Source: Iphione sp. A-MEVVRFRX5
Taxonomy: Eukaryota
Length of the DNA stretch: 64,000 nucleotides
Reading direction: 5' to 3'
NCBI GenBank assembly: GCA_976226885.1
Contig: OZ320314.1
Location: 98,580,001 to 98,644,000 of the forward strand
The position numbers and the translations under genes were made by a program. The notes beneath the pieces were generated by a model. The model was not told where the DNA came from, made no database searches, and saw nothing but the letters and a program-made list of their open reading frames with translations. Positions 1-61,773 of this stretch are shown one piece after another (positions within the stretch are counted from its first letter, which is position 1; every line of letters begins with the position of its first letter).

Positions 1-3000
1 TACGGGAAGTCTTGATACTTAGACTGTTTGAACATGTTCACGGATAGACATTGATTTACCAAACACCCGATAAGGATGGCATGGAGAACAGGGGTATGGG
101 TAAAGCTCTGATTTATATTATGTTAACTTCTAGCGGTCTTTAGTCCTTCTCTTGCTGCGTCTCCTGGAAGCTTGCTTGGTGTGCTCCCACCTTGGGGGAC
201 TGCTTGGTGCTGAAGGGGGCCGGGCGTGGGTGGTAGGGTAGGAAGAGCTGGGGAGGGGCAGGACTTGTTCGCGACGCCCAGCCAAGGAGTAGGAACTCCT
301 GCCAGAGTACCTCATTAGTGAGGCGTTGTCATCTCGTTCGCCGCCCGCCTGACAAGTGGCGCCACTCGCGCACACTCCGTTTGAATGGTGCCGCCGTTCA
401 TCCCCGCCGCTTCTCACCGCCCTTCGCTCGCCGTCGCGGCAGCCACTGCAGTCGTCGTCGTCGTCTCACCCTCCACACTTCCCCCTCCCCCCGCTCCTTT
501 CCCCCTACACTCTGCCTCGTGTCGCGCGCTCAGTGCCGCGTAATTAACGTCGCGCGAGCAGTCATCCCGCGGTTGGCGTCTGATGAGCAGCGCGCCGCGC
601 CGCCCCGCTTCCGTGCCGCGCCGCGCGCCCCCCGGCGCCGCCGCTGCCGCCGCGTCCCGTCGTCGAGTGTCCTCCACAGAGCTGCCGATTGTTCGTCGAG
701 GGGCTCCGCCTGTCAGGCTTGTCCTTTTCGCTGCTTGTGCGATGCAGTGCGGCAGTTGGGTCAGAAAGGGCGGGTCGCCATCTTTTGACGGTGGAAATGC
801 CCGGACACGATCAAGAAAACCTGGCATGTCACCCCTGGGCCCTTGTTACTTTGTTATTGCTATTAGCGTCACGTGGAGGAGCTCCATAATGAACAGATTT
901 GAGGTAGATGTAGTTTCATGGACGACTGCAAGCCGATTATCCAGAAAGCCACCAATTTTACCTGGTTAGAGGAGCACATAATTATAAACTAAGAGTGTTT
1001 CTATGATTATAAATAAGACTTCGTCAAATTTAGGTAATATTGATCAGCATGCATTATGTTAATCCCATTGTCAAAGTCAACATTGCCATTGATAATTTAT
1101 TTCAAGTTCAAATTGTGAATTAACATAGACAATCTTTTGTTCGTGGTGAATAGGAGAATCGTATAAATATGCATTATCTAAGGCCAACCAGGGTACAGCT
1201 ACATGGACGAAGAGTTAATGTCAGAAGTTCGTCGCACGGCAAGACAAAAGAAATGAAGTTGGTCCTGGCTAGGTCTCTGGCATCATTGGCTGTCGATGGG
1301 TGATGACCTGCTCAATGAGTGACTCAGGCATGGTAACTGAGCATCTGGCGTTGCCCAGGTACACACGACTTACAGTCGATTGAAACCACGTCAGCCGAGG
1401 TCTCCAGCTCAAACAACTCCTGTAATGTTTCTTTGACGGCCTTGTTCCGTGCACCAAAAGCTTTCTTCTCTTTCCCTTTATGTACCTAACATTTGATGGC
1501 CCGAAGTCTTAACTGTAAAACAATATACTAGTAGTTAAAAGTTGCCCTTCATTGATTCACATGGTTACTACATGGTTTTATTTGTATGATTTACCAGTTT
1601 CTTTTTCATAAAAGACATGAGTGACTAGTTACAGCTGCGTTTGTTTAATCTACAATGTACATGTATATCTTAAGATTTCATTTAAACATGTCTGATGCAT
1701 CAAGGATCAACCCTCAAACAGGACAATGTTGATGAAGCAAAACTAATTTTATACATATCGATTTCATCTGGATATCCTCCTAATGTTGGCTATATCTAAG
1801 GAAATGGGTGATCCAGATAAAACTGAAAGGCATTTACATACCAACCATACTCAATGCGACAAGGGTCATATCGGGGTTCGGGTTTGGCAAAAAACATGAC
1901 GCTTTTAGAGCAATGGATCGTTCTATACATGTACTTGACTGTAGGTGCATGAGGGTGTCCCCATTGATGATCGGATTGGTCGATGTTGACAAAAGGCCAG
2001 TGTCTGTCACGCAATCCCAGGTGGGAAGATAAGTCACCTGTCACCAGCTTGACATGCAGGGTCCGCTGCGATCTCAATGAAGACTGACTTTATTTATCTA
2101 CTTACACAAGGTCACACGGCAACTTCTAGGCTTTTACTCCATGATCGTCTCAGATTCGGGTCAATTTGACCCCATGTTTAATCGAAATATACTAAGACAG
2201 CCGAGCGATAGTCAAGCTGATGAGTTTTTTCCTCTTTCCTATAGACATGCATAGTCCAGACTGATTTCCTGAGCGCGGGCAGAGCCTGTATCCTCCATAA
2301 AGTCAGTTCAAATGGATCCATTGAGACAGCAGGGATTGTGGAAACGGAGTTGTAAATGAATGTATTGCCGTTTGGGGACAGTTTTGTTGAATAGATTATG
2401 GCATTTTCTGGCACAATACAAGGGCATGCGGTCACTTGTACATTTATCGTGCAATTGCTTGTGTTTTTCCTTAAGTAATAAACATAATTTAAGAATACCG
2501 ATATATAAATGGCAGAATGTTTACTTCTATTCTTTTCGATACAGGGATCCCTAAAGTAAGCATTAATTAGTGCTGTGATTTGATTGATCGAACTGAGATT
2601 GTGATAAGAGTGAACCTAATGGAACACTTTCCGGTGAACTATCTTCAATGTTTCAATGTAATCTTCAAAGTTCTGTGTATTGGTTACATCTCACAATGCC
2701 TGTCATAAAGTTCCATGAGGAATTCTCGAATGTTATTGAATTTTTACCTTTCATACTCTACCATACATTTTTCATTAAGAATCCTCATAGTTTTCTGTAT
2801 TGGTTACATTTCACACAATCTGTGTTTGAAACTGAATCTGTAGTGGTTTGTCAAGTCAACCAAACTCATATTTCAGTACATGATATCTTTTGTGTGGGCT
2901 CTGCGGTTTTGTGGTCTCTGGCGAATCTCTACCTTGGTCACTCGTCACAGACGTTCACGGACGTGCTCCTGTAGTAGTTCCCCAAATAGGGCAGGCAACC

Positions 3001-4129
3001 TGAAGGGTAAAGAGGAGAGTGGGGTGTAGATGGTGGGCGTGTGACATGGTTTGGCACGTGGAAGACGTAGTCAATAAGAGAATGGGGCACGGGATTAGAG
3101 CTTGGGCGACGACAGACCTAACCGGCTGTTGAATGGAAGAGAGTGTCTTAGCCTGCGGGTCTGCCTCCCCATTCGGGCCGCTCACTTTGTTCCTCAAGTC
3201 ACCAAGTCAGCACGCGGTCGATGTCAGCTCGACATGCCACGTGCTACCAGCGACGCCCAAGCCCAGCCAGAGAAAATGCCAAAATGCTATTCAGGCCAGG
3301 GAACCCCACGGTCCATTGACTCTAAACTCGTCGTAAATTTGTGGTTTGTGAAATGATATAGATAATAGATATAGACATCTCCTATAAGAAAAAAGAGGTT
3401 TTAAAAAGTTCCCTCCTCTCCTTTTGTTTCCACAAATGAGTTCTGTGTGCGTTTGTGTGTGTCTGTGTGTGTTTGGAGTGCATGCAGAAACGAACGTTTG
3501 TTTAGCCACCCTCTTTGCAGCCCCCTGCAAGGGGTATTTCCTTTATTGTGTGCTTAGTAGGCAAATTTCTTTGTAAATCTCTTGAAACTGATCCATACAC
3601 TGTGTAAACTATGCAGATTATTGAGTACATTTCTTTTGCAAATGTTCTCACCTATGCTACCCTGTATCTTACCATATGTGCTGCTTGATTTTATACACTT
3701 CTCTGCAGTGTATTGCACGAAATTTGTGGTCGTTTCAGGCAATGCACAAAAATATATACTAAGTGCAATGATATGTGAGCATTATATGTAATAAATGTAA
3801 CTGTCACTGATCTTGATTTTTTTAATTTTTTTATCCTGGCAGTCCAATGGTGCCAGCGTATTCTACTACAATGCATTAATAGGGTTGGGGTTTTCTATGT
3901 ACACGTAAAAATACAGAACTTAATGCTAGATATACAATATCTATATAGTAGATATGAGTTTGAATTACTTACATATATACAAAGAGTGGATTAGATAATA
4001 CTACAACAATATATTATTACAAAGTGCATTTAAGAATGATATTCCATCACATAACAATTCATGGGACTCTCCAATTGTCCTTCATTAGTTTGTTGAGAAG
4101 AAGTTTTTTAAACCTGTTCTTTGGCAAAA

Positions 4130-4964: not shown

Positions 4965-6861
4965 ACATAATATAACCTCTCCTAGTGATTATATGCCTAT
5001 TAGACAAGTAATTGGATAACCATGGCATTGCACTACCAAAGCCTAGTAATTGTAACTTCTTTAGCAGTACTTCACGTTGTATACATGCATATTAACATCT
5101 ACATGTATATCTATTTATTCATTTCTGTGGTCATGTATCAGCCGTTCACAGCGTGTTCTGCCACACGAAGACTGATGAATGTATTCAGTCCTGCTCCAAA
5201 TCGGGCCGTTTAACGCGTTGGCACCGCCCGGACGCCGCCGGCAGTGCGAGATGATTAGCTCACACACCACGCGGGGGCGCCACGACTAGCGAGGGCGGCC
5301 CACTGTGAAACGCGGGTGCCATGAAGTGGCAACGCCGAACGCTTTAGCGTCCGCAGTGAGAGCGACGATTGCGGTTAAGACGAGGTTAATCCACTAGCAA
5401 GTAGCGGATTGTCCCTTTCGCTTAACGCCGATAGAGGGGGCTAAGGACGCCGGTCCTCTGGAGCTGTCCGCGCACCATTCAGCGACTCGAGAGAAAACGT
5501 TAAATGTTCCGTTAAATACTCACAGTAAGCGCTCCCCTTCACGGACACCACGACCCCCTGGCCCCCTACACACTCACAACCTATTGCGTTCCAAAGTCTT
5601 AGCGTTGGCATCAAGAGGTAGGCAGCGAATAGCCTTGTCCGGATACCTTTCTCCGACGACCGGACCACCTGCTTGCTGTTGATGCTCAACAATGAGTGGT
5701 AACGGTGTGGTTTGGGGGTTTCCGACGTTGTGCTATTGCTTTGCACCAGTCGGCCGAAATTGTCGTTGTGTTTTTTTTCCCGTCCTACGGTGTCCATGTT
5801 CACACGCGTTCCAGTCAAGTCTGAAACATGCTTTAAAACTACATCGCCAGGCTAAGTCAGTCGTGAGGAATAGGCCATGCTAGGATTTACTGGCACTCAG
5901 TTCCTGAGACAGAGCAGGTTTCTCGTCACTTTAGCTGTTATTGCAGACGACATTTCAGTTGTCGGTCTCCTTGATCTATACGTGCAGATTCACGCATCCG
6001 TTAAGTATGTCTTCCCGCCAATACCAAACTTTCTGTTTCGTGACCTAATATTCGATTAAATACATGTAATTTCATCCTATGCATGTATCAATTCAGGAAC
6101 CTCTGTACTGGCGAAAAGCTTACAGACATGGATAAATAAATCGGAGGGAGAGAAAGATAAGGAGATTGAAAGCAGGAGACGCAATAATAATTTTGAATGA
6201 GATAAGTCCAATTCAATACCCAAGTGCGACCGGGATACTCTTCACAATGGACATTCCCTTCAAATGAATGAAGGAAAATAATAATGTAGAACAACGTAGA
6301 ATATGAAGCATGCATGGTACACAAAGTAAATACAGATAGTGTGGTAAGTGAGGGCAAACGGAAATAATGGGATGGATAGCAAGCGGAACCATAGCCAGCC
6401 GGCAGAATGGGCGGCGAAATAGACATGTTGAATTTTCCAATGACCAATGACCCCTCTGGACCAATTACAACGAGTATGTGCGCAGGGAACCCAAGCCATC
6501 AGCGGCCAAGTGGATGCCACTACGCTAATTGGCCTTGAGCGGTGGCCGAAGAGACGGAGGGCACTACTTCCTCAATGCCAGCCACCAGCTGGTAATCAAC
6601 TTGACTGCCGCGCAAAATGATGTATAATCATTTCTACAAACAAGCCGACCCACTCTCCGCTCGGGGAAAAACCGCTGGCCTGAATGCATAACGAGGGACG
6701 TGGGCGCAGGGCGCGCGTGAGAGCGGCTGCGTGCGCGGCTGTGTGCGATGATGGCGGCGTCAGTGAGCCCTGTTTGTTCGTCTCTCAGCTTGTAGTGCCT
6801 GTTTGGTCTGCCTCTGGTTTTGTGTTTGATAGTCGCAAGCGCCCATTCTCTCTCCCCGCCG

Positions 6862-6950: not shown

Positions 6951-9339
6951 GGATCTTTCACTCTTTCTACCTCCGCCTGACAGACATCATCATCATTAAC
7001 TTTAAACACGCTGCCTCCCGAAAGGTGGGATTAGGGATAGGCCTGGGAATTGGAAAATAGCCTTTTAAAGGGTGTATTGTCACGCGAGCCGAATGATATG
7101 CCTGGCGACCACAGTGGTTTGATTACGCGTGGACGCCCAGCCGTATGTTTGTTATTGTTTCGGAATAATCAAACCTCCTTTTGATTCCCACCATACAATG
7201 ACCATGATCACACTATAAATCCCAAGGATTCGGCAAATCGACCCATTCAACAATTTATATCAATGCACAGAGATGGTAATACGATTGTTTGTCAAAATTT
7301 CGATTACATTTACGGGTGTATCAAATTTAAATCAAAATTATCTCAGCAAGTCTTGTTTCAAGAAGGAAACAGTCGATGTTTTGATAATCCAGTCATTTAC
7401 TGACATATATGGATGACGGTCACCAGTGTCCTTGGTCGAATATTGCCTTTAAAGCTTCTACTGAACAAAGGTCAGTGAGCTTTTTATACGCTTGCAATTC
7501 TATTTTCTCCTGGCCCTGCCTTTGAGATAACCGCCGCTCATAAGCTGATGCTCTGCAGTGGCCGCAGGGGGTCCTCTCCGTGCGCCACACCGCCCCCTTC
7601 CTCGCCCCCGGGCCAAGCATCGCCGCAACGACCGGCGATTAAATATTTAAGGTCCTTGCCATCGAGTGCCTGGACGCGAGCAAGCAGGGTAAGAGGCGGC
7701 AGCACCGGCCCTGAGAGGCCGGCTGAGATTGCTATGAGGACGACTGGGTACTGGCTTCCGCCCCTGTTCGGGGTCCTTTCATCTGACGGCCAGTATTTGG
7801 TCAGGGGACAGTGAACACCCGGCCGCACCAGCAAGTCGGGCCTCTCAGCATCAAGTCCACTGTTGTCCTGATAACCCCCTACTCCGTCACACACCAATAC
7901 CTTACCCCCCCCCCACACACACACACACGCAGACATCACCACCGCCACCAGCCGCCATCACTATAGGTAGCACCACCCGTGTCAAATGTAGTAATACATG
8001 TACATGTACACATCAGTAACTATAAACCCCACCGCCACCACCACTGGAGTCATGTCTATACCCTACTCACATCTTTTGACAGCTGAGCCATCGTTCCCCA
8101 GTGCACAGGAGTGACACTGGCAGGGGAGTCGCACCCTCATCAGTACTGGATGAGATGCCCAGAAGGCTCCTCTTCACTTCTAGCTAGGCAGTGGTGATAG
8201 CCTATGGAGGAGGGTTATGTGGAGGCGAGGAGGGTGAGGGAAGAGTGTTGATGCGACCGGATAAGGTCAGATGCCTTGAGGCATAGTGTCATCCATTGAG
8301 TTAACAGAAAATTCAACTGAATTCGGCAACACTTGTGACTGGTTATTTATGATATTTATTTAGCCAAGAGGTAACGCTGTAGCCATATCAAAGACTTAAC
8401 GCTAACAAATTAACCAAATATCCATGCTTTTCTTCAAGTTCTCTCTCTTTGGTATATGATTTTTAAATCACAAATTCAAAAAGACAACGGACAAGAGGTC
8501 GTTTTTTAGTTTTCATAAGATTCCGTGAATATTTGGCCCCGCCCAAGGAAGGTGATGAGTGACAGCTCAACATCCCTAACCAACCCCACTCCAACCCCCA
8601 CCCTACACGCACCCCCCACCACCTACAACTCCCACGAGACATTGTGGTCACGGCAACGGACGCTCCGAGGATTAATCATGAGATTAATTAAGGATCAATC
8701 CGGTTTGACAATGATAATTATCCCCTGCAAACATGACCGCCGAGACCAGCCTGTCGGCTGCTGGCATGTGATTTATTGAATCACACAATAACACTGTGAT
8801 GGAATTGATTGCAAAACCATTATCTGAAAACGTATCTCTTTATTCAGACACGGCGGGCTTTGGGGGTTTTATTAGCACCAGAGATTTGCCATTGTTTTGA
8901 TATGTTTCACGCGTGTGTCGCAGTCGATAAAACGTGCACCTCATGCGTTAAACACCCGTCGCTTTGGTGTAAGTAGTAGAAAAATGTTTCATTGGCACTG
9001 GGTTGAAACAAGCGCCGATCACATCTAATTCGCAATGTAAAACACTTCAGTGAGATACCCGGCTGTATAGCACGTCTGAGGATAGAGAAAACATAGAGGT
9101 GAGTTGTTAGATAGAGAACATATTGTCATCTTGTTCGCATTGTCATCCCTGACAAGGGACGCCTTGCCGCGTTCTATAGTCAAAGACGCTCGACACAAAG
9201 CTTCACTCCTCCTCGTAAACCGCACCGTATGTACAGCCAACGGACGCCAACTTGTCGTTGACCTGTCAGGTTGGCGCCTAAACCACGTTCCGCTCGCTGT
9301 GCCGCTGGTCCTCTTTATCTCTTAGACCTTTCTCTACGG

Positions 9340-9945: not shown

Positions 9946-12900
9946 GTAAGATATCCATATGTGAAGAGTAAAGACTCCAGATTTACGGACTGAGTTCATT
10001 TACATGTGCTACATCGAGTTCAAAGGAACATAATGTTGTGATTGGTAGAAACGCGGTATCCTGAATTCGTAGTTCACTAACGTTACTTCCATTTGACATG
10101 ATTCCTTAACAGCCTGTCCTTGTGTACATGAAGTTGAGAGTATGCATGATTAATTAGCCGGGAATTACATGTAATAGTTTCATGGATATTGGACTTGATT
10201 CGGTGGTTGTAGTACAATACATTATTTCCATCAAATTACGTATCGATAGGACTGTATGATATCACAAAGTGCTATTCTTTGAATGATATCTCCTTAACTT
10301 GTTTGTCTTTGTGTCGGCTGTACATGTATAAATAGCATGTGAATCAGGGAATTATATTAAAATCTTCATGAGACAGAAATAATGTATATTTCAGAAAAAT
10401 GCAAACATTTTCATAATTCGTGTTTGTTGACCTGGTAAAAGAAACGATCCTTACATCATAAAAGAGTAGGCCTATTTGTCTTGACTTCGTATTTCCACAT
10501 GATGTTTCGAAAGGGAATATTTGAAATCACACCAAGTGCTTATATACCTAAATTCACTCCTGGTTAGAATTTGATACAATGTAATTTAAGGTACTTACTT
10601 GCATATTCTATTACTTGGATGCACCATTTTTATTCATTATGGGTGCAAAGCGAGAAAGACACGGAAACATGTTTAAAAGTAGAGGCAGTATCATACGAAC
10701 ACGAGACCCTCAGGGTAGTCTCTTTTGCAGGCAGATATATATATATTTATATATTATAATGTTTATTTCACACTGGGGGTGAGAGAGGCTTGCAGTCTTA
10801 CAGTTCAAGTTATTTTGCAATGAAGCATATATATCATGAATGCAAACAATGCAACCAATATACTTATACAATATACAAGACAGAAAACGATTGCTTATAT
10901 TTAGGTTGTGTCTCCTTGGAAAGTAGCGATAGTGATAGAAATAATCATTATTAGTTTATTTCTGCAGGAAGTGGCAGAAAGTGACAATGAAAAAATGGTC
11001 GAGAATGGGAGTTAAACTCAGTACCAATGATTTCATATTAAGATATGGTGAATAGTGAGTTGGTGAGTTGTGAGAATGTATCCATATTCAGTGCAACACG
11101 TAGTAGTTCCATAGAGTGTTTGTGGAGAAAAAAAGATAAGGACATATAGAGAGAGAGCTAACTGTGAAAGACTATTTCAGTCCCTTTGAAGCATGTAGTT
11201 GGTCCTTGAGGTTAAATGTTATGCATACCAATTAGTGATACTTCTTCCTACATTGTTTCCCAAGTTACGAAAGTCCGCTTCTTATAACTTAACATTCCGC
11301 GATATCGGTACCAAGCAGCCAACAATATCTTGACCAGTTCGACGATCCTTTGACGTCGCTGTATGAATATCATCTCAAGTACTTCAGGATTTAAAGTAAC
11401 GCAGAGCCGAGAGGCCAATTGGAAGGCCGTCCTCGAGCACTTTCTGTTGTTGGCGTTCTCGCCATCCTGTTAACATAAGGGGTGCTGTATATTATTCACA
11501 CCCACCACCACCATCAACACCACCCGCCCGCCCCGGTGTTTGGTCGCGCCTTGTTGACGCGCGACATTAGATCACCGCCCGCGCCGCCGCCGCCGCGTTG
11601 CCTTGCCGCCCGCAATCGGCCGCCGCTCAGTGGGATTTCCGCGGGCCCAGGGCACCTGTGATCTACCTCAGGCCAGTAGATTTGTGGATTAGCCAGCCGT
11701 CGATGAGGGTGTTTGCGGAGGCAGCTAGGGAGATCGGGACCAAAGACCACAGGCGTTAGGTTCTTAAGCTCCGGTGCGCGCCGACCGTGAGCGCCCAGCT
11801 ACAGTTGGCCGAGCCGGAAGGTTTACCCTGAGCAGAGCAACAGATCAATGTGAAAGTAAAGCAAATTTGATGTTTTATCCCTGCCACCAGACATTGTTGT
11901 TCTGATGTGTATAACACGCGAATGTTTGGATACGTTGGGGATACTTGTCTATCTGTACACCCAAACCGAAAGAATAGTACAGGTTATTCTTGAAAGGAGT
12001 GACCAAAAAATCTGCCGATCTCTTCCAAAGAATTTTGTTTACCAGGGCATAATGTTAAGATCAAGTGTCACACAGACCAGATGTACATTTTTCTTTCCTA
12101 CTTCGTGTTGTGGCGGTTTTTATTGAAAGGTAAGACAAGCTGATAGGAGGAGAGGGGGGTCGTCGGGGATCAGGCCGCCGCCTGAAGTGTGCTGGGGCCG
12201 GGAGATTATCAACTGGTCGCGGTCAACAGTGCGCCACCTGCGCCGTTCTCAAGGCTCCCGCCCGACCCGATCTCTGCCGTCCTTCCGCCCGAAGACGGCG
12301 CGGGCTGGACTCTTCTGTATATAGAACGGGGACTACATTAGATCTGTGGGCCCGAGGGCAGTGATGTAGTGGGATATTGTAATAGTTGCTATACCTCCAC
12401 TTACCAAAAAAGAAATCAGGATATTGTGGCGGCTTTGAAATTCAAATGGTATTGTAGTATTGTGGTGTGGGGTCGACCATATTCAGAATAGAAGATACGG
12501 CTCTCAGGAGGTCGGAACTATAGGCATATAACTTTGTTAACTTTGCGGGGCATAGGCCGCCTAGTCAGAATGAAAAGGAAGGTGATTTCAGCATAAATCG
12601 CCACACTAATGTACTGTTGAGGAAAACTTATATGCCGTTTTCGACGTTACCGCAAATCCTGATACAAATCATCATTTCCAAAGAATATGCGCGGTTGTTT
12701 TCTTGTGTCCAAAATAGATAGGACTGATGGACGACAGTAAGTGTAGACACACGAAGAAAACATAACATACTATCTGGCATTATGTTTGCGATTTACATTA
12801 TACATTTAAGACAATATCAGCTCAATGATTTCAATGACCTTTTTTTCATTATGCGTTTGTATTTCACTACATGCAAGAAAAATTAGTTCATAAATTTAAA

Positions 12901-15686
12901 GGGACATTATAACCGTTTATTGTAAGGCTGTTCCTGATATCAAAGGAACCTCCTTTTTATTTCCTTGTGATTTTCCACCATACTTCCATTGCATTAGTGG
13001 TGCCTTGTATAACAGCAGTACTTGGAATAGAATTATGATATGCACGGTAAAAATGATACGTGCAAAAGGTCAGTTATCTCCTATCAGTCCTGGACCAAAC
13101 ACAGGTGGTCAAACACTATCTAAGGCCGGTAAGATTGTGTGAAACCTGATCAATCCTTCATCCCCGCTTCACTTCGTAGGTGCGTTTCTTCAGTTGACTT
13201 TTCATTCTATGCATATACCTTTCAAATGTATTTACTTATTGTACTACATGTGCATTTAAAAGTACGTGTATATGTGGTTTCAAAGAAATTATCTCTACAA
13301 CGTGACTTTGGTGACAACGTGGGTTTTTCGTTTTGTAATTGAATCGAAAAGTATCATATTAAGTGTTTTATTTATTCAAAACATTAAAAAAATAGTGTTT
13401 GTGTATGTTATTTTATTCACAACACTTTCCAATTTCAAGTATATCATTAACTGGCGAAGTAGTTGTAAGTACATTGTATACATGTATTTGCTTATTTATT
13501 AGCTCTAGGTACCTAAACATGTAGGGAATTTTTCTATCGCCAAAACATCGCGCTCTACTCTATAAATAATATGATAAGCATCCTCATACCTCCCTTTTGT
13601 CCCGGACAACGCTCGGTTCATTACAGTTAACATCATTAGCCAGATGTGTACGAACGATGAAATCTCCTGTGGTATAATAATCCTGCTCTTCGAGTGGATG
13701 GTACCAAGCACCGGAGTGTTAAGCCGTGGTAGAGAGTGTTGACAAAGGAGAGATGACAATGGGAGTGCTATTGTCATACGAAAAGCGCCACCCTCGGAAG
13801 TGAAGTGCACTACCACATATACAGTTACTCCTACTGTGACTCTGTGGAGTGACATCCACCCTAACTGTCGGCACGATTACTCGTTAACTTACCTGTATGC
13901 TTTTGATCACCGATTACATTTATCCGAAATTTAAATCTGGACATGTCTCTCGATGATTTAACAGCGGATTCTGCTCTCATAGATATTTTAAACGCGAACA
14001 ATTACACTCTTTTCTGATTTCTTATGCTACTTCTAATTTTAGCCAGTAAGCCCTAAATATACAGATACATAAAAATGTCCAGATACAGGCGCCAAATCAG
14101 AGGGAAATAGACAAATCTAGACGGCTATAGTTGTACCTTAAAAACGTTCAAACTTCGGGTTATGTCAACTTTATGTTTAAAATCTTTTTATCAAAGAAAA
14201 CATGCCGTGTTACTTGAACTAGCCCAGCTTTTCGGGTCACGTCTACCATAATGAGCTCTCAAACGGGAGCATGTTTATACATGCATACCAATTGTTGGTA
14301 TATCTTAACGGATGAGATACTTCGGGAGAATCACAAGACCGCCTAGTGTGTGGGAGGATACACTGAGGACGGGGCTGGTGGAACGTATTACGATAACGAT
14401 GATGAGGACGTTAATTTGTTGGGTAAATCGGAAATGTAGACGTAGGCAACTTTGAAATGCTATATATTAAAGAATAGGTTGTGAATATGTGGGGCGGCAT
14501 AAGACATCGCTCCAGACGCTTTGCGGTGCCCCGTAGAGACACCTGTCGCTGAATGTCCACTTCAGCCTTTTAGGAAATGACCACTTCAGCCTGCATTTTA
14601 AATAAAAAAGAAACTCAACTCGATGACCAGCAAGGTCGACCTCATGTCAAAGTTCGCAGCCCTGCCCAGCTTGACCAGTGGCTCAAGAGCTTATAATCTC
14701 AGATTAGACGATGACCACCGCGATGGACAATGACATAGCATTGTCTTCTATGATGTTACAGGAACATGTCATGAAACAGTTCACTAGCGCCGCCAAGTGG
14801 GTTGGTTGTCTGAAGCAAGTGGCGCTTAGTGCCGTTCCTTGATGTGGGCCCACACACCTGCTTCTTTGGCACAGAGAAAGACGAAGTTTGATGAATGTTT
14901 CATGTGGGAGAATAGCGGAGGCAAGATGCAACATATCGGCAGTTAATTCCTTAAGATTTCAGCGTAAAATGATGGAGGATTGATATCACATGGGACACCG
15001 CGTTCTTCATTTATACTACTTATTTACTGTACATAAATTTTCATAATTATGGTCGTTTCTAAATCATAACTGATAACATTCAATAGGGTGAAAGATCTAG
15101 TTTGATTTGATTTTTTAGCAACATTACCAACATAAATGACTTTTTTCAAATGGGCCTTGTAAGGTATTTTTATTAAAGCAATATGCCTTTAATGAGAAAG
15201 TACCAGATTTTTCAATTTTTTGAATACTATTCTTGGAAACCTACTCATCACGGTAGGTAATACATGTACATATAATACATGTAATGCATGTATGATCAAA
15301 CCACCGGGGCATCAAGTCCTTGGAATGTATGAGAGATAGAGGGAGTGCTTCCTTATGTATGTGATGCCATGCTGCTATGGTTTACACTATGTTGCCATGT
15401 TGTTTTTTTTCATTTAGACATATCCCTTTTGTTTTTGTCTGTGTAGTCAGGTTTGTCATCATACATGACTGCTGGAAACCTTCCTCCACATGTTCGTCTT
15501 GATACCCTCCATGTTTGTACATGACGGAGTGACAGGCACCACTCTTTTTTACCACTCGTTTATATCATGATAACATGGCATCGCCAAATGCCCTTGTATT
15601 ACTTAAATGTATATACAGAGGTCGGTCTCATACTGTCTTATACCGTTTCATACAATTTCATACAATTTTCATACATCTTATACATA

Positions 15687-17584: not shown

Positions 17585-18301
17585 CATCTCTAGGATAACT
17601 TCCAATGTCCCTGTGTTTTGATGAATTAAACACATGTAGCGTTAGTATCACTTTCAGTAACATTCCGAACATTTTCATGAATTAAACACATCATTAGTAT
17701 AATCTCTATTCAAAGTCCCCGCATTTTGATGGAATGCCGTTGTATATACATAATGTGCATACAGAGTTAAATCAGTGACGTACAATTGTATGAATGTTTG
17801 TTTGTTTGAAATTGTTTATTGAGTAACTTATATCACATAACATTATGTGGACTTTCAATCAAGTACTCAGCCATTACGATGTTTTTATTTCTTATTGGCT
17901 GACTTCTTGTAATATATATTCTTTAAGTAGTTCTTTATTGTAGATCTTGGCTTCATAGAGACAGTTCACGGGAGGTCGTTCCAGTGTAGCTGAATCTGGT
18001 AGATAAAGCTATTTTGGTAGTTCATTGTATTGGGCTTGTGGATCAGTATTTGATTTCCTGCTCCTAATCTGGTAGTCGTACGAGCCTTTTTTTGACAGAA
18101 TCCTAATTGGAACAGATATGTAATTAATAAAGAGGACAGATAGTACATCCTATCATGAATCAAGTTAATGCCTCTAGACCTAAACCATTTTTCCACCTCA
18201 TCATTTTTAGCACAATTATTCAGGATACATCTTCTTACTGATTTATACCATGCTACCCGTAATTTTTCCTTATCCGCCGTTCTTGATGATAAAAGATAGT
18301 A

Positions 18302-18478
18302 CAGTGGAGTCTCTATTTACGACCACCCCTTGGGACCAAGCTGAAATGGTTGTATTGGCAAATTTGGTCGTAAATAGAGTATCAAATGTTGAGGAATCAG
18401 CATTATGGGACCCATCTGAAGTGGTCTGAAATAGAGAATGGTCGCAAAGTGATATGGTCGTAAATAGAGACTCCACTG
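18302..18478. mobile_element. 177-bp MITE, Tc1/mariner-pogo type, copy 1
   Basis: Perfect 24-bp TIR CAGTGGAGTCTCTATTTACGACCA / TGGTCGTAAATAGAGACTCCACTG, TA on both sides (18300-01, 18479-80). Confidence 0.95.
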
Positions 18479-18577
18479 TACATACCACAATCTAAGTACG
18501 GCAGTATGAAGGCGACGAAGAATTTTTCCATCAGTACTGTAGTCATAATTAACAGACCTGCAACGACCAAGCAAATA

Positions 18578-45545: not shown

Positions 45546-46994
45546 CACAAAAGGACGCGCTGACACCACGTGACCCCGCAAAGTGACAAGCGCCGTTGCC
45601 GCGCCTGCGGATTGATCGAAGCGCCGCTCGTCGGCGGTGATTAAAGGGACAGACCGATCAGCGTCCGCGATTCTGCGCAACGGAGAAGTGGGCGAGGTGG
45701 CAGGGGGTGAGAGATGAGTCCGCAGAACCCGATGTAACTATACACCGAATCATTGCATTAGCCTGGCAAGGCACACCGTGTCAATCTTTGATGGCGGGAA
45801 TCGGATGGTGCATCTCACTTGGCGGCGCCACCTCCTTAGCTCTCCACCTTGTGTGTAGGAACTGTGTGTGTGTTTGTGTCTGTGTGTGTCTGTGCGCGCA
45901 CGTGTGCGTGTTTATCCTAGGGATGATTGTATGTGCAGACATCCTGGGTGGGTGACCTGGCCTACCGTGATTGGGGCCATGGTTGTTGTTCAGGAAACGC
46001 CCGCTCTCTTCTGATGAGGCATTCTTTGATTGGCAGTCTGCTCCTACCCGCTTTGCCTGAGGCTCCCTCTACTGCCCGGTGTAAAATGGAATGGTGGCTT
46101 CGGAAATTTTTAACTAAACGGTCCACTCTGATCAGAAGAGAGAAATTTTAAATCGCACCGCGACGGAAACCGTTAGTAAAGCCTTATAGATACATGTAAC
46201 GCTGATACACCTAGTCAGAAAGGAGGTCCAATGGGTCGAACAAAATTGGTAAAAAGATGGCTTAAATAACTTAAATATAGGGGTAAAAGGGATTCAGATC
46301 TATTCTCTCCGTGGCTCTCTCTATCCCAATGTCCGTGTGACTGTTTTCTATTTCTCTCTAGTAATGCTTTGGATACTAAGGGCTGATTGACACACTCTAC
46401 AGCTAGTCACTCATACACGCGCACACAATAAGTCATGTACATACAGTACCTGTGCAGTCAGGCAAGACACCCAGTGCGATTTATCCTGACACGGGACCGT
46501 TTTTAAGCAATGCTAACTTTATAGAATTGGAAAGAGGGAAGCTTATATATCATACCCGGCCAAAATATATCGGCCAAAAAAGTTAATGGGCATTAAACGT
46601 GACAGTGAAAATCACCTCTAACTGTTAGTTCTCGGTACTTTAAGAGAGATCTCTAGAAAATTGAAATTTATAAAGGGGAACGTTATGGATATTAATGAAA
46701 TTCCCTTATTGATTAAGACGCAGTTTTTCTTTCGGTGCCAAAAGATATAAGGTATTGCGTAACCCTTATTGGATATTGCCAAGCCGTCTTTGCTTGTGAT
46801 TTTTAGTCTTTCACTTCCATGTGCTTGTATGTTTGTCGTACTCTTTTCTAGTAAAAACAATGCGAACGTGTTCTGCCGTTTTCCTCCAAAGCCCAAGATG
46901 TCTTTTTGTTCATTACTAGTGTGTGTGTACATGTATGTCCTGTGTTGAGTACTGTACTCACGTGTGTGTGGTGTAACATTTTGCATATTTGCAG

Positions 46995-47133: not shown

Positions 47134-48083
47134 GTAAGACAGAGAGGAGTTCATATAAACTCTCGTTTGTGGGATTACAGATATGGATTCAATACATGTT
47201 TATTCAATAAAATTTCGTAGGAATTATGCAGCGAGAACAATTGAGGGAGATCTATTGTGAGTAAAAGGAAGCAAAGTTCGTAAACAAAAATGTTATTGAT
47301 GCCACTCACTGGTTTATCTATAGGATAGTTTTTATACACCTACTTACATCTAATACTTATATATCGAGAGGAATAAAGATGTTCTTGGTAAGTAAGTAAG
47401 TAAAAAGGTAGGCAAACATATTTACATGGACTGAACCTTTCCTGCAGAAATGACGTTATAAGTGACTTGACTGGTAAAGAAAATACTGATTTATTGGAGT
47501 CAAATAGCAGTAAATGTGGCACAAGTTAAAGGCAAATTTAATAGTCTCCAAGGTGTCCCACATGTCAAATGATTTCTGTGCATGACTGGCATTCTGAGAC
47601 ATTTAAGGTAACAAATGGTACTGTATTGTGCTTCTATCACAGCCTCGGATGTAATAATATTACAGTATTGCTATGAAATCTCTTCATAGCAATACATGTA
47701 TCATAGTGCAGCGTAAATGTACAGACTATATATTCAAAGATTATATTATTAGTATCTCACTTATTATAACTTGTATGACAATGTACTGTTTGCCATAGTA
47801 TAGTAGTCTGCAATCAAATATTACATACATATATAATTACATATACTCGGTCAGGAATTGCCCTACCTTCCATATACCAAAGACAAATACAACAATTGCA
47901 AGCACCGGAGGCGCTTGTGTACATAGAAGCACATCTCGCAACAATGAAATACCCTGGCAGTCTTGGCAATGCCATGATAAATAACGTAAAAAAGACAAAT
48001 CTGAATGCACGTTTGCATGCCCATGTACGTTCTATTCAGAGGTATTCATTGTGTTTACGATCCCTCCTTCTCCTTCCCTCCAG

Positions 48084-49317: not shown

Positions 49318-49451
49318 TTCTTCTCTGGAAATTTTCTTGTAACTAAAACATCATCTTATTACATGTACTTTCTTCATCGTCATGCTAAACATATTACCGA
49401 TCGTTGAACGAGAGGAGTCCATCCTTAAGTCTGTCGAATGTTCCGTTACAG

Positions 49452-49822: not shown

Positions 49823-50002
49823 GTGCATGCAACAGTGCTTATTATGCATAACTTATCCGTCAATTATAAACGCCATAACAAATGTGGTAAGCAAACCAAG
49901 ACACGACAAATTTGTGAGAAATTGGACCTTTTCTAGGCTGTCCAAAGCCTCCATCTTGTGCAAAATACTTCAAGTAGATGTTTTATTTTTCGTTCTACAC
50001 AG

Positions 50003-50244: not shown

Positions 50245-53200
50245 CCTTACCACAGCCTACCAGCCCGGGGCCCTGTATTATCCGTAGTATTAGGGTCCTT
50301 TATCAGTGCAATGTAAACAGTACATATACGTCATGCAGCAGCAACGTTCTCACTGCAGTTATTTAATAAGCTCCTTTGACCAGCATGCAGGAAGACATTC
50401 CCCCTGAATTACGATCAGTTTTCCATTCAGCTGTACTCTGTCTTTCTGCCCTAAACACAGAACATTTTAGGAAAAAATGGCATTTACGTTGCGCATTATT
50501 TAGTTGTCCACATCCAGGATCAATTCCAATTGTCACTATACTTGATGAAATCCGGTCCTTTTCATCCAGCATCTGCATGATATTTAATAAAGAATTTATA
50601 ATCGTTACATTGAGCTGACCTCCATGAAATGCTTGTGGTGGTTCGAAGCTTGTCATATATATATATTATATATATACACACACGCATGAACGTTATAGTA
50701 GATCATAGGTATAGGTTGACATGCACATATGTCTCCTACACTTCTCAAATCTTCATGGTATACAATATCAGATACATACACAAAAACCTGCAATACACCT
50801 GCTGCCTGTCGCACGTACACGTATTTCATTATTTTAAAAATAAGATACCAGCAGTAAATATTACCTGTAGTGCTAAGGTGCAACACAGGAGTAAATATTG
50901 ATGTACAGGTAAAGCATCACTAAAAATAGAAGACCTCCAACACGCAGACAGCTACTAGACGGTGGGTACGAAAAGTTAAGTAGCAGTGTAGCCTCCAATA
51001 ATTTTATTTCAGAATTGTCCAGCAATGTACACGTCGTAAATGTATATACATGTATATACGGATGTATGATAGTATTCTAAACAAATTGTTAACTGTACTA
51101 GCCTGTTGCAGACAGACTCAAAATTACCATTTTGAGTATCATCTAATGGATTACATTTTTTAAGCATCCGCCATAGGATAAGTCTTTAAAACTCATCATG
51201 GAACTATTATTCTTGCGTGAAAAATTAAGCTGAAAGCCAACGCTGCCATGGGACTGCATTCGGTAACTATTTCTGTTATGTTGTATTTTCAGTGATACTT
51301 TGAGGAAGGTCCTTAATGTTGAAAGTTGTGATAGATATTTCTTGTGTATAAAGAAGCTAGTGTGTTTACTTGTTTTGTCCCTGGCTTCCATGTCATGCCA
51401 TTAAAATAGCTTCTCTGGTATTTTTTTGGAAAGGGCATTTTGAAAAGAGATGAAACTCTGTCAGAGTGTGCGATTTGTTATTTGTGTTGCTTCTTCTAAT
51501 AATGCTATGCCTTGTGAAAAAATCTCAATTGATACATATACTTAGCACGTCTCGTGGCTTCCTGCACTGACATTTGTATTCAATAGTAGTTATATTAATA
51601 CTTATCCAAAAAAACTTTAAAGAACGTCAAGTTCAAACTAGGAGTCTCTTTTTACAAGAGGTGTAAGTCTGGGGTCCATTGCCATGTTAATTTATTATTT
51701 TAAACCAAGTTTGTACTGTATACTGTAAATAGTATTTGCGCCTGAAACGTTAATTTCTCTCCTTATCATTTATAGGCAAATCATTATGCAGTAGCCATGT
51801 ACATACCACGGGTCAATCTTAGACTACCCAGTAACAAAGAAGGAAAATTCATTAAATTCCGTTCTCTCATGTGGATTTTTGGGAAACTGGTCAGGTCTGT
51901 TACTGGAACTTCTTTCTTTTGTTTAAGATAGGAACGCTTTCATGCAATATTTCTTTTAATCTGTGAGAAGGCATACGTATGCTTGTTGTAGATTCGTATT
52001 TGTATGAAATGTGAACATTTGATCATAATTCCAGGGAATATCGTGAGCTCTAAATAGAAAAGAAGAGACATTCATTTGAACTTGTTGCACTTGGCTGCCT
52101 GAGTTGAATTGGGCCTACCACAGAGGAGGAGATGTACACCGATGCTAATAGTCAATCCACAAACGGGAAATGAACATGTCTGGAGCTCCCTGCTCTCTAA
52201 CACTGCCAACTCTGAGGATTTCTCCACTGTAAACATTGATACTGGTTTTTCTTTTTACATAGCAATAGGTGAATTGGTGTATTGCTTGGGTGGAAATGAT
52301 TTGGGGCTCACAGTGCGCCAATACACATTGTGATTTTTAACAAGGGTAACTGCCATGGACATCCTAGACGTACACTTTTCCCCAGTGTGAAGAGATCCTA
52401 ACGTTGTGTATACCTTAATCAACTCACTCCTTTTCCAACTCGAATCATCACCAACTGATGTCATCGCCAACTTGTACTATCCTACCGGAACAGATGTCAC
52501 ATCTGTGCACAAATAGACATTCATATCACACATTATTAGGTTCAAATATATAGACGATACGTATAACTAGGTTGTGGTTATTCATAGTAACGATAGTGTA
52601 ATTCAACAAATGCAAGGGTTTACTGACGGAGGGAGTGAACTGGTCATGGCATGAGTTGGCCATGGTGCAAAGCATCATGCTCGTGCTTGGGTTGACCATC
52701 ATGCATCTAACTATACAATAGACATCTCCTACTCAGCGGTATCTCAACAGTAGCCTGAATGAGAATGATGTGTTGGAAGCAGAGACATGCTGCGGTCTCT
52801 TTCGTGTTGATTGAAAGTTGATTGGTATTCCACCAACGGTGTATAAATATCTCCCAGAGAAAGTTTGTCCGGTTTGTGATGTAAAAGGGAAATTGTCCTG
52901 TAAATGTTAAGGACGTCTTTCAAACATGTAGATGTTCATGTTCATTAAAAATACTACGAAATCTATCCCTTTGCCTTTTTATTTGAAATGCCTCACTTTG
53001 TTTAGCGTCCTATTTCCAGGTCTACACGGAGATACACGTATGCATGTACAATGTACATATATGTTGACATAAAATACTTTTAGTTTAGATTTCTCAGATC
53101 CTGATATCAAAACACAATTTATCACTATCCACTATCCACTATGGTACTATTATTAGTACCTATCACTTTAATGACTCCAACAGAGCAGGCTGTAGAGTGA

Positions 53201-56788: not shown

Positions 56789-59715
56789 ATGTCGAACAAA
56801 ACGTATTCAGAGGACGACATCAAGGCATGCTTTAATGAAATTGACACAGACGGCAGTGGATTCATCAACAACAAGGAACTAGCCGCAGCACTAAAAATCT
56901 TGTGTGACGGAAATGAGGCCGAGGCGGAGGAACTTGCAGGTGTACGTATGTGTGTATGCATGGCTGCACATCTTCATATTGAACTTACATATGTGTAACC
57001 TATCGTTGGCTAATTCAGCTGCTTCCTTACAACATACATTATATGCATGAAGTAGTCATATATATACATGTATATCATGAAGAGTTGATTGGCCAATCAA
57101 CTGTTTATCTAGCATGTATCATGTCCAATCAACTCTTGCTTTTCCTCTACATTCTGAAAGGGATATACATGTATTGTAAATACATAGCCACAATTGTACA
57201 GCCATTGCCATAATAATACGTTTCAAACGTGTAGTCTATATCCCCTCCGTTCCTAGACAATTCATGTCATGAACACCGGCTTCCTTAACCACGTCGTGTC
57301 CCGACCTGCTGTCGATTTTTCATAGGCTGTAACTGCTTATTAAATTCTCTAGACCTTTTTCGTTCCTAGAAGAATTTATCGGGCACCAGGGTACACATAG
57401 TAGACATTTATGTCATCGTTGTCTTTCAATGTTGCAGTCTGACATACAGTGAGTTGGTGATGTGGTCTACGCAATTAACGATGGTGTAGAGTGTCTAGTC
57501 CTAAGGTTTAGGCACGAAGCCCGAGGGCAACCCCAAGGGCTGAGTGTTTAAACCTTTGACTAGTTCACAAAATAAAATCATTAATTGCAGTTCTGATATG
57601 GTTTTATTGTATTTATTCCAGCACACCTGTGATTCTGGCCATTTAACTTATCATTGGTGTAGGTCACATGTGCCATTGAAAGACAACGATGACATCCAGG
57701 TGTGCTGGAATAAATACAAACATTATCACAGTTATTATCACAGATGAAAAATTACAGAAATAATCACACTCAATGGCCATGTTTACAAAACTTTAAGTCC
57801 AGCATTAAGTTATTGTCATCGCACAGTTGTTGTGATAAGTGGCGAGCCACGGTCAGGAAACTCTCCAGTGTTGCTGGTGAGAGATCATACGGGTGGGCCA
57901 CCCCTCCCGCGTCTTAGGGGGAGTGGCTGCAGAGTCAAGCACTGGGATGATGTCAGTTACTGGAGGTGACCATGGTGGAGACACTGCTGGCGGCATAACT
58001 CCGTTAAGGGTAGGGGTAGTTTACAGGCATGAGTGGCATGAGATGGAGGGGTTACCTTTTCTAAGAAAGAAAAGTTCAGAAAAAATCCAATCTATACCTT
58101 CCGGACTATCTAGTCCAAGTTATCAGTAAAAGAAGTAATTACACTCATAAGGAAATGAAGGGATTATGGAAATGAATGCGACTGGATAAGATGATAAGAG
58201 GTAATTTTAGAGTACCATGAAATATCGACCAAGTACGTTTGCACTGGATGTGATTCATGATGCGGCTATTAGAATGATTCTGGTACTGGATGTGATCCTA
58301 AGTAGACGTATAGTAAATTCGCGGCGTGGATGTCATCCATGTGAAGACACCAAATAATTAAACTAAAATATATCTCAGGTAGCTTGATTACTCTTATTGG
58401 ATATGATGTTAAAAAGATGTAGGCTTCCCTAAGGGCTAGTTTAGATAGTATCGTGGACGGGATGTGACCCTTAGCTCCTCTAGTAGCAATCAAGGTGAAT
58501 GAATATTGTCCAGTACCTAACGATAATATTAGTATATATTGTTGGCCGTCATGTCAAATAGATATTGATCTAGCAAGTCCCTGAGCCAGTAACATTGATT
58601 ACGCGTACACCCCCACTATGTCCATCCACCTATTTAATTGATGATATGTTGTATGTTATACATTCATCCGGTTACAAATACTACTTTTGTATGATATATG
58701 ACCAGTATAAATAAGTTATAATAATAATAATTCAAACTTTTTTCTTGGCAATATGGACACCAGGGAAATTGGGACCGAGTTGTTGATATGTCTATTTGTT
58801 TTCTTAATACTAGGAGATAAAATACCGTTCCACATACCTATGTTAGTATGTGCGGATTTGGAATGTCGTGGTCTGGTAACCTAGAAATACTGTGAGTGAT
58901 GTTTGCAGACTGACCGTCCGAAAATTTCCCTCACGTGACCAGGCGCGTCATATGACCTACCCATTCTGTCCAGTCGTGCTGTGTAGCAGTTCATTTTTGG
59001 AAAAGAGCTTTTGAGAATTTGTTTGAAGAAATCGACACAGTGGCGGGCAAACATGTATTGTATTGTATGAGTCTGTCTATTCATACATGCCAAGCTCTTT
59101 CTGTCATGCCCAAAGCTATGGGATCTCATATATATAGCAGCATGGTAATCACGTACAGACAGCTGGCGTCAGGGTATACCCAACAACAATTCACCAAGAA
59201 TTCAAAGTACCCATAACGCTGAGAGAAGTAGCAGATAACACTTCACCAAGAATTATTTCTTTGGTAACGCATCTCCAGCAATTCATGCTCTGTATCATTT
59301 AAGGTTGAAATAAGAAGGCGAATGACGTTTCATGGTGAATTAAAAGGCCCAATATCTATGCTCCACCAGAATAGTTTTATTGCACTATGTTTTGTTTTGT
59401 TGCTTTTAGTTGATGATGACCGAGGATGATAGAAATGGCGATGGAAAAATGAGTTACGACGAATTCAAAAACGGCGTGCTGGGCAATATGCTGCAGCAAG
59501 GTACATGTGGTTAGAATAGGACGTGGCAACGTCTGTCTCTTTATGACTTCAATTATCTCACTTTTCGAGTATGTTAATAGAAAATATGAGCATGCTAGTA
59601 CCGCTTTCTTTGTATAAAAGACCAACAATGAACACGATAAGTAGCACAGCGTTAGACAATATAAACTATTATATCGTCTGTGTTAATAACCTGATCTCTT
59701 CATTTTTCAGCATGA
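56789..59715 (+). CDS. Small two-EF-hand calcium-binding protein, 82 aa, 3 coding exons (56789-56941, 59410-59500, 59711-59715)
   Basis: Exon 1 MSNKTYSEDDIKACFNEI-DTDGSGFINNKE-LAAAL...LAG|gtacgt. Exon 2 ttttag|LMMTED-DRNGDGKMSYDE-FKNGVLGNMLQQ G|gtacat. Exon 3 tttttcag|CA TGA. Both 12-residue loops are canonical and all phases agree. Confidence 0.88.
57495..57563. repeat. 69-nt imperfect long inverted repeat (hairpin)
   Basis: Arms CTAGTCCTAAGGTTTAGGCAC / GTGTTTAAACCTTTGACTAG with an inner AGCCC..GGGCT stem. Confidence 0.7.
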
Positions 59716-61773
59716 GACATCGATGTATGAAGACTTGTCGAAAAAGGGCTTTATGATATTTAAGTAATGCTGATTACTTTTGGAGGCTCGTTTCATCTGT
59801 AAAAATCTACGTTTTTTTATACTCATTATTGGTTGTCATATTCTTGTCAGATCACGTTACAAGTTTTCTTATATTATGGATGTTGCTGTTTATAGTCAAA
59901 TGGAATTCTATCATTTTTTTAACGAAGAAATGTCAGTTTGCACTTAAAAAAGTGAAGGCACTTGATCGTTACTCATCTTATTCTTTACAGTACATTCCTT
60001 TCATGTACGTGTACATCGTATTCTTTTTTGGTATATTTGTTTTCAAACTACTTTATCGCCCGGGTGTCTCGGACCATTCACGCAGGTCAATCAATAAAGT
60101 TTATTCCTGAAATTCTCGATAGTCTTGTGATTTACTCACTATCTTTATTCGTGCTTGATAATATAACAAACAAGGGGACGAAGCCAATCAAATTACATAC
60201 AAAAATGTCAAGTGAATGAACGCAAACGAATATGATAATCATTGATAAAGCAGTCCTATTAAGTCGTCATTATTATCAAAACTGATCTGCTTGAATGAAT
60301 TACATGTACATGTTTTCTTGCGGTTGGTAGGTTATTTCTCCTTTAAGCTACGTACCTGTCACTAATATCAAAGTTAATACAAATATACACGCGTAGGTGT
60401 GTATACTCCAGAATATTCACCCGCAAAAATTTGTATCCTCGTATTAGATTCAGTGTTATCATATCCCTGTGAGATTGTAATTGAAGCATCGAATAAATCA
60501 CCATCCGTCGTGAGCACCTTCGAGCAGATACTGAGCAAATCCGCAGAGGAGCATGATATAGCTGGCGTTCTTGATAACTGTACTGTCCTCTACCGATGGG
60601 GGTGTGCATCAAACGGTGTGCTTCAATCTCTTGTAATCCATAACCTCTTATGCTAGAGTAGAGATAATGACTCTCTCGTCAAACAGGTGAGCCCACTGAC
60701 ACCTGGCCAAACAGATCAGGCGCGGGGGTCAGGAAAAGGTCACAGATGAAAACAGTTCGGAATACATGGAATTCGTTTTGTCTGAAAAGCAGATGAGCCT
60801 AACAAAACCAGTATGACATTCCAGTGTGTCATTTTCTCCATTACGATAATGAAAAAAAGATCAATTTAATTCCTAACAAGCGATGGTCTGTTGGTTAGAA
60901 AGGATGTGGTGAAACCCTTTCCCCTGGCACAGTTTTCCCGAAACAGTATAACATGTCTGAACAGTTATGTTTATTGTACGTAATACATTTTCTACCTCCA
61001 CCAACTCCAACATCCGTCTGTACCATACAAGGAGGCGTGTTTATTGGCATCCTTTCGGGAAAATCGCTCTTTTTGAGAGAAACCCTGCCAGTTTGTGAAT
61101 ATGTAAGTATAGAATGAAGAAAAGCAGTGAACAGAAGGATACTTCACGGGTCCCAGCCTAGAAGGGGTGGAGCAACTCTCCTACTCACCTAGTTCGCACA
61201 CGTACCTGCGTCCCACTGGGTAGTAGATGGTATTCAGTACCAGTAGCAGAAATAACCACCTGATGGGGCAGGACTGTAGTGCTACCCCGTATCCTTCACC
61301 TTACCACCACGTACACCCTGCACGCGACATACTTAAGAAGAACCTCGAAAATGAAGCAGCTATAAGATCTAAAATATAAAGACAGACAGACACAACGTTC
61401 AGTCAAATTTCATCTCAATCATCACGTGATCCATAAATGGGCCCCAATCTAGCAGTGCTTCATTAGGTCCAATGATCTGTCTATATACCCCTATACCCCG
61501 CATCTGCTGTAAAGGCGCATACAATTTCTCCATTCTCAATTTCTCACTGCCCCCATAACCATCCCTTTTCTCTCTCTCCCTGGCCTCGAGAAATAAGAGT
61601 AGGGTTCACTTTGCCTAGAGACTTGTCATGCACTGAGATACACACATATTCATACACATAGGATAGTTCCTATACATGTGACCCTTAAAACGGAGAGAAA
61701 AAAGGGATGAAGACCAAGAAACGGACCTCCGGTCACGTTATAGTAATGTGAACTGTGTGTATTGACTTAGTTT

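Follow-up and report, generated by a model that had tools for sequence, protein, structure and literature searches.

A palindromic TA-flanked octamer, the commonest non-microsatellite word of an Iphione genome, as a probable transposon excision footprint

The 64-kb stretch of the Iphione sp. genome studied here (the window, C2:98,580,001-98,644,000 of the assembly) contains on its + strand an NR2E-type nuclear receptor gene (tailless/PNR/dissatisfaction-like), with exons at 24456-25445, 46994-47140, 48088-48351, 48772-49026, 49421-49621 and 49993-50241, and carries 33 exact copies of the palindromic octamer TACATGTA, the origin of which is the subject of this report. The first exon encodes the whole zf-C4 domain and is followed by a 21.5-kb intron 1 that includes an assembly gap (34448-34633); the octamers closest to the gap are those at 33391 and 42549, and no argument made below relies on continuity across it. 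Also present are two copies of a miniature inverted-repeat transposable element (MITE) and the remnant of a long interspersed nuclear element (LINE) (Table 1). An earlier reading of the same DNA, made from its letters alone (the sequence-only reading), had proposed that the octamers form a genome-wide field of Tc1/mariner excision footprints. It had placed none of them in an exon, and indeed none lies within a protein-matching exon of the NR2E-like gene; the two longer palindromes that it had seen around octamers are both present.

Table 1. Octamer sites, MITE copies and LINE remnant in the window
Feature	Coordinates	Strand	Remark
TACATGTA octamer	1658..1665		
TACATGTA octamer	1926..1933		
TACATGTA octamer	5100..5107		
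TACATGTA octamer	6061..6068		
Double unit TACATGTACATGTA	7995..8008		octamers at 7995 and 8001 overlap; interpreted as an earlier scar hit again at one of its TAs
TACATGTA octamer	10166..10173		
TACATGTA octamer	10321..10328		
TACATGTA octamer	13479..13486		
TACATGTA octamer	15261..15268		then CAT (partial second unit)
TACATGTA octamer	15276..15283		
181-bp MITE, TA-flanked	18299..18481		perfect 24-nt terminal inverted repeats CAGTGGAGTCTCTATTTACGACCA; ends CA...TG
181-bp MITE, second copy, TA-flanked	18576..18756		
Remnant LINE reverse-transcriptase open frame (RVT_1)	18679..19203	-	paralog ruler for octamer 18989
TACATGTA octamer in decayed LINE reverse-transcriptase frame	18989..18996		reads as clean 6-bp CATGTA insertion at TA
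TACATGTA octamer	19574..19581		
TACATGTA octamer	19816..19823		
TACATGTA octamer	20931..20938		
TACATGTA octamer	21018..21025		within 18-bp palindrome 21013-21030
TACATGTA octamer	21092..21099		
TACATGTA octamer	25838..25845		intron 1 of NR2E-like gene
TACATGTA octamer	27364..27371		intron 1 of NR2E-like gene
TACATGTA octamer	27382..27389		intron 1 of NR2E-like gene
TACATGTA octamer	27742..27749		intron 1 of NR2E-like gene; then CAT
TACATGTA octamer	33391..33398		intron 1 of NR2E-like gene
TACATGTA octamer	42549..42556		intron 1 of NR2E-like gene
TACATGTA octamer	42619..42626		intron 1 of NR2E-like gene
TACATGTA octamer	45195..45202		intron 1 of NR2E-like gene
TACATGTA octamer	46191..46198		intron 1 of NR2E-like gene
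TACATGTA octamer	46928..46935		66 nt upstream of exon starting near 46994
TACATGTA octamer	47693..47700		intron
TACATGTA octamer	49360..49367		intron
TACATGTA octamer	51047..51054		within 18-bp palindrome 51042-51059
TACATGTA octamer	57065..57072		
TACATGTA octamer	57166..57173		
TACATGTA octamer	60301..60308		then CATGT, giving 13 of the 14 letters of the double unit

All 33 copies were found where the sequence-only reading had placed them by eye, against a mean of 1.44 and a maximum of 6 in dinucleotide-preserving shuffles of the window. At the actual GC content of 44.8%, a first-order Markov model predicts 1.4 copies, in line with the 1-2 copies that had been expected for about 43%; the prediction rises to 3.6 at order 3, 15.6 at order 5 and 23.6 at order 6. 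The excess survives di- and tetranucleotide models (observed over expected is 9.3 at order 3), and it shrinks only at orders where the sub-words of 6 and 7 letters consist for the most part of fragments of the octamer itself; TACATGT, for instance, is followed by A in 33 of its 46 occurrences. In the ranking of all 8-mers of the window, TACATGTA comes first after (CA)n, and it is an outlier whether it is compared with all 256 palindromic octamers, with the TA-NNNN-TA words or with the pyrimidine-purine alternating octamers.

The excess had been supposed to be genome-wide, and it is. We counted 258,438 copies of TACATGTA in 1.179 Gb, that is one per about 4.6 kb or 14 per 64 kb. It is the commonest non-microsatellite word of this genome, and the window is 2.4 times denser than the average. 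Eight random 10-kb samples of the genome held 22 copies in total, and in 144 kb of sampled sequence 55 copies were present, a 17-fold enrichment, against at most 8-fold for any other TA-NNNN-TA word. The order of the inner letters matters, as the control palindrome of the same composition with TG before CA (TATGCATA) occurs 41,996 times genome-wide; the CA-then-TG order exceeds TG-then-CA 6- to 7-fold. Among the one-letter neighbours of the octamer, enrichment is strongest for transitions (TATATGTA 5.4-fold, TACGTGTA 4.7-fold, others 3.3- and 2.7-fold), and this spectrum looks like that of a pure source decaying by transitions.

The origin of single octamers was tested in LINE frames that have paralogous copies, the sequence covered outside the window being nine LINE loci and 80 kb of random sample. 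The octamer at 18989 interrupts the LINE frame of the window, which reads KLQYMYTLRK there, and eight paralogous genomic copies read KLQY--TL or similar. At the DNA level, the window has 'caa TA CATGTA t act' and the paralogs 'caa tat act/aca/acc', and deleting CATGTA recovers the paralog reading exactly. Over about 14 kb of LINE alignments, this was the sole 2-codon insertion backed by more than two alignments. As aligned, a TA at 18989 has cleanly gained the 6 bp CATGTA, which 8 of 8 paralogs lack. A second LINE-frame octamer, L018:785, lies in a poorly conserved segment of 31 amino acids, against 29 in both alignable paralogs, and equal length is regained on deleting CATGTA after a cTA codon; it is probably a second such insertion, although an inexact one. 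A pattern search for an empty site of L018:785 returned the locus itself as the sole match. A third, L005:2846, is taken up below; the frame that holds it (L005:2507-5329, G000:C4:10002507-10005329, - strand) is an intact 941-amino-acid LINE ORF2 with endonuclease and reverse transcriptase, from a family of about 12 copies, one of which is 100% identical and three of which, at 93%, are shorter by exactly 6 bp across the same 601 bp.

The octamers also sit in the same kind of site as a resident MITE, a comparison that the sequence-only reading had suggested. For 100 genomic insertions of the TA|CAGTGG MITE, we tabulated by hand the eight upstream bases and set them beside 122 half-sites from 61 octamers and 23,818 half-sites of ordinary TA. 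At positions -3, -2 and -1, MITE flanks read A67 T17 G12 C4, T45 A36 C14 G5 and A53 G25 C12 T10; octamer flanks read A57, T52 A34 and A49 G31; and ordinary TA flanks read A32, T34 A28 and A33 G22. By chi-square, MITE and octamer flanks are inseparable (p=0.12, 0.25 and 0.61 at -3, -2 and -1), and both differ from ordinary TA, with p from 5e-4 down to 8e-13. The match includes the A at -2, which breaks purine-pyrimidine alternation, and therefore a shared liking for alternating DNA is not a full account of it. Beyond 3 nt on either side, the octamer flanks have nothing in common.

A further line of evidence comes from tandem arrays of the unit CATGTA, which are dispersed over the genome. Single octamers number 258,438 (N8), doubles (TACATGTACATGTA) 10,218 (N14) and triples 380 (N20), giving ratios of 0.040 for N14/N8 and 0.037 for N20/N14; about 2 of 48 distinct triple sites among the matches listed extend to a fourth unit (26-mer), a ratio of roughly 0.04. 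Chance would provide some 200 doubles, as estimated from local conditional frequencies. Slippage makes the ratio rise with array length, and the flat value of about 0.04 therefore carries no signature of it. We modelled the series as a birth-death process, assuming neutrality and a steady state, in which an array gains a unit whenever an element inserts into and leaves again one of its k+1 TAs, and ceases to be perfect at (6k+2) times the mutation rate. The resulting ratio, (k+1)r'/((6k+8)mu), is nearly constant and matches the data, and its solution places r'/mu at about 0.25-0.28 inside a scar against 0.025 at an average TA, a scar TA being hotter by a factor of some 10-11. Independently of the arrays, the MITE target profile predicts 6.5-fold for an end TA and 9.7-fold for an inner one; scar TAs are predicted to be hot because the scar puts A-T-G before its TA. 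Indeed, TACATG immediately precedes 2 of the 100 MITE insertions. As a separate observation, TACATGTACATGTA recurs three times at 181-bp spacing within a short tandem repeat at G000:C1:667078-667453.

Elements that could leave such scars are resident. Both MITE copies of the window read TA|CAGTGGAGTCTC...GAGACTCCACTG|TA with perfect terminal inverted repeats, so that their ends begin with CA and finish with TG, as had been noticed before; the letters between the TAs of TACATGTA are the terminal dinucleotides of this TA-flanked MITE, the one family examined. Copies elsewhere in the genome are 88-99% identical, and the 25-nt end has 706 exact occurrences. A six-frame genome search for DDE_1, the pogo/Tigger-type transposase domain, gave at least 3,156 first-look candidates (e.g. 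C1:171035964-171036491); all 150 that were scored had the full domain (E about 1e-41 to 1e-43), mostly in stop-free open frames of 400-680 amino acids. Many of them share identical scores, which points to several young families that may be active. On the MITE itself, we note that the two window copies are in the same orientation and 94 bp apart, that the family is small, and that its internal TAs are all in contexts disfavoured by its own target profile (predicted enrichment at most 1.5).

From these data, we consider it likely that most copies of TACATGTA were left behind, on excision, by cut-and-paste transposons of the Tc1/mariner superfamily that target TA, probably pogo-type elements and the MITEs they mobilise. 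The observations that carry this interpretation are the excess of the octamer, the independence of its sites, one 6-bp insertion at a TA, the equality of the flank profiles, the geometric array series, and the abundance of CA...TG MITEs and of pogo-type frames. An element would insert at a TA and duplicate it; on leaving, its transposase would cut the non-transferred strands 2 nt inside the element, so that each flank would retain its TA and a 2-nt 3' overhang, CA on either strand. End joining that keeps both overhangs would then yield TA-CA-TG-TA, a gain of 6 bp at the old TA. The family responsible, the 2-nt stagger and the repair route are the parts that we infer. Such scars would decay neutrally, mainly by transitions, and their TAs, placed in A-T-G-TA and thus near the preferred target, would be hit again at about 10 times the rate of an average TA, giving (CATGTA)n runs.

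Could the octamer be a by-product of mutation? It might arise by transition decay of (TA)n, (CA)n or (TGTA)n, by CpG decay of TACACGTA, or by slippage of CATGTA, the first route being one that keeps pyrimidine-purine alternation. The alternating octamers as a whole class are 2.5-fold enriched, ATGTACAT is enriched 5-fold genome-wide, and one LINE family has TACACGTA and TACATGTA at the same site. However, ATGTACAT is contained, as the central 8-mer, both in the double unit and in any octamer with ATG before it, and 7 of its 15 occurrences in the window overlap an octamer. Moreover, the 55 octamers of the 144-kb sample exceed both (TA)4 and the supposed one-step precursors (TATATATA 25; the intermediates TACATATA/TATATGTA 33, both strands), and the genome-wide sixfold preference for CA-then-TG is against such an origin. 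Tandem Repeats Finder placed 7 of the 33 window octamers in tiny tandems, all of them built of the octamer word itself, left 26 as single units, and found none (0 of 33) within (TA)n, (CA)n or (TGTA)n arrays. Together with the flat array-length ratio, this speaks against the (TA)/(TACA) microsatellite slippage that the sequence-only reading had named as a possible refutation, and we regard a mutational by-product as very improbable. The idea that octamers are the conserved tips of an unrecognised and very abundant MITE or dispersed repeat, with a TA duplication and ends starting CATGTA, seems to us hardly credible. Octamers are about twice as clustered as a Poisson model predicts, and a few nearby pairs do form inverted repeats that reach past the octamer (20931/21018, with 19 of 23 letters, and 27362/27751), but most octamers are single, the trio 20931-21099 is not a duplication, and we rejected the pairs as MITE tips. 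The flanks of the 33 copies are unrelated, with at most 22 of 40 letters common to any pair and nothing shared past 3 nt, and the tips of an element would not decay more slowly than its body. Furthermore, the repeats found by genome search of the first 20 kb of the window cover no octamer, and a repeat search for paralogs of the window octamers indicated that the sites are unique DNA.

A symmetrically flanked palindrome could instead be a selected binding site for a dimeric factor, enriched near developmental genes such as this nuclear receptor locus. The higher density of the window agrees with this, and the same word is used by an oomycete MYB-related factor (PMC11134190). Nevertheless, 258,438 sites, in 10-20-fold excess in unique DNA, are far above the motifs of known factors, and neither a 6-bp insertion within a dead LINE frame nor overlapping 6-bp arrays at a constant 4% ratio is expected of a binding site; the neighbour spectrum, too, is like that of neutral transition decay. 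We therefore hold selection for such a function to be quite unlikely. The alternative closest to excision is a TA-targeted 6-bp insertion of another kind, such as repair at fragile TA steps, templated or by fold-back, in which CATG happens to be written and the TA duplicated. It agrees with the clean case at 18989 and with the tandem series, and the short textbook excision forms are unenriched. Against it, no repair route that writes CATG and duplicates the TA is known, the inserted letters are precisely the terminal dinucleotides of resident TA-flanked elements, and the flanks track the MITE target profile in detail, A at -2 included. Such an insertion appears improbable to us.

Several points weigh against the footprint interpretation. 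Direct tests of origin are few: of the three LINE-frame octamers, one is a clean insertion, one is a probable insertion and the third is a counterexample. The last, L005:2846, aligns gap-free to a distant paralog and is common to three close copies of a low-copy LINE family, a fourth copy of which reads TACACGTA; as aligned, it is inherited within its family and is no insertion. A minority of octamers is native or derived from CpG decay, and about 10% are expected from background alone. Thus, the prediction that aligned repeat copies would reveal 6-bp gains at TA held for 18989, probably held for L018:785 and failed for L005:2846, and the claim that each octamer records a past insertion and excision has to be reduced to most of them. 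All comparisons were made within one assembly, and no element-filled counterpart of an octamer site was seen in it. The commonest footprints reported for Tc3 are TACATA/TATGTA and those for Sleeping Beauty TACAGTA/TACTGTA (bioRxiv 10.1101/659086). Here, the former are enriched 1.1-fold; the latter, which the sequence-only reading had thought frequent, are enriched 1.6-fold at order 1 and just 1.0-1.2-fold at orders 2-3. The 6-mer background is high enough to mask an excess of a few tens per 170 kb. The dominance of a product in which both overhangs are kept is unusual and is our main ground for caution. In rice, natural excision has left a heterogeneous set of scars that includes deletions and filler DNA, 8 of 94 being 'perfect' (PMC4423477). 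The flank match could partly come from a common taste for bendable, AT-rich DNA. A microsatellite phase test in (TAAA)n arrays gave 0 matches and is uninformative; the same test in (TGTA)n was dismissed, a 6-bp gain there being equal to one unit plus a 2-bp CA insertion. Finally, a genome search for the Tc1-type DDE_3 domain gave no match: the proposed Tc1/mariner agent stands at the level of the superfamily, with pogo (DDE_1, abundant) as the likely family in place of Tc1, and the pogo-type transposases should probably be regarded as candidates only for moving this MITE.

How does the proposed footprint compare with known systems? Tc1/mariner elements cut the non-transferred strand 2-3 nt inside the element (PMC2170065). 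As with Tc1 and Tc3 of Caenorhabditis elegans, the TA duplication is kept with CA...TG end letters between its copies, and a 2-nt stagger is the simplest source of CA plus TG; unlike in the commonest Tc3 scars, in which one overhang is kept, both are apparently kept here, and the short forms show no detectable enrichment. Sleeping Beauty likewise leaves a TA-flanked scar made of element-end letters by end joining, but despite the CAG...CTG ends of the local MITE, its TACAGTA/TACTGTA forms reach just 1.0-1.6-fold here, which means that the main route does not use a 3-nt stagger. The active pogo-family transposon Passer, assayed on plasmids in human cells, left 0-4 bp between its two TAs (PMC9976928). 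It belongs to the DDE_1 family, like the thousands of copies in this genome, and 4 bp between TAs would make the 8-mer; its assay gave a mixed spectrum, whereas the genome-wide fossil record proposed here has one dominant word. In the rice excision catalogue, natural scars were also recognised at genome scale, yet through the alignment of two rice species, whereas here a single word tops the k-mer spectrum of one genome. A limited full-text literature search (TACATGTA with footprint and transposon) found no description of a dominant footprint word of this kind, and the only biological use of TACATGTA met in it was a Phytophthora promoter motif, which has the same eight letters but is an oomycete promoter element unrelated to a field of 6-bp insertions in an animal.

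Of the two halves of cut-and-paste transposition, excision is the one that goes unseen, since what a genome normally reveals is just the copies that stayed. If the footprint interpretation is true, TACATGTA would be a countable record of about a quarter million past excisions, each with a 6-letter scar, and where one uniform scar accumulates, one assembly would be enough for reading excision rates, target choice and repair outcome. The scars would frequently generate 6-bp indels, in-frame 2-codon insertions included, and would offer a route to tandem repeats without slippage; the octamer would also be a practical dating marker, old unique DNA being rich in it and young insertions poor. The more complete account is one on which we are evenly divided. 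It would comprise about 260,000 intact scars and about twice as many one-letter derivatives, of one uniform kind; a scar birth rate per average TA of about 2.5% of the per-base mutation rate; two A-T-G-TA targets per scar, each about 10 times hotter; (CATGTA)n series seeded and extended by reinsertion and excision rather than by slippage; and in-frame 2-codon insertions added to coding DNA.

Some minor features were met on the way. An open frame at another sampled locus (L016:185-574) weakly matches a sodium:neurotransmitter symporter at its C-terminal end (SNF, E=5e-6); an octamer, probably in an intron, is found 9 codons upstream of the matching portion. The repeat map of sampled locus L007 is dominated by one 300-bp family. 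In the window, positions 16120-16645 hold an old repeat of about 500 bp with internal inverted 17-mers (16143-16159 and 16529-16545), for which at least 2,458 first-look candidates were found; its copies are 70-83% identical, and many of them begin at about 16280. The best named relatives of the NR2E-like protein are in molluscs, nemerteans and brachiopods. An alignment of orthologous introns through this gene was tried and given up, the best matches, about 80-90% identical in the DNA-binding exon, being from other phyla and too distant. The window is otherwise very poor in repeats, and its observed/expected CpG ratio is 0.85, against 0.46-0.67 in the eight random 10-kb samples; both properties suit a developmental-gene locus.

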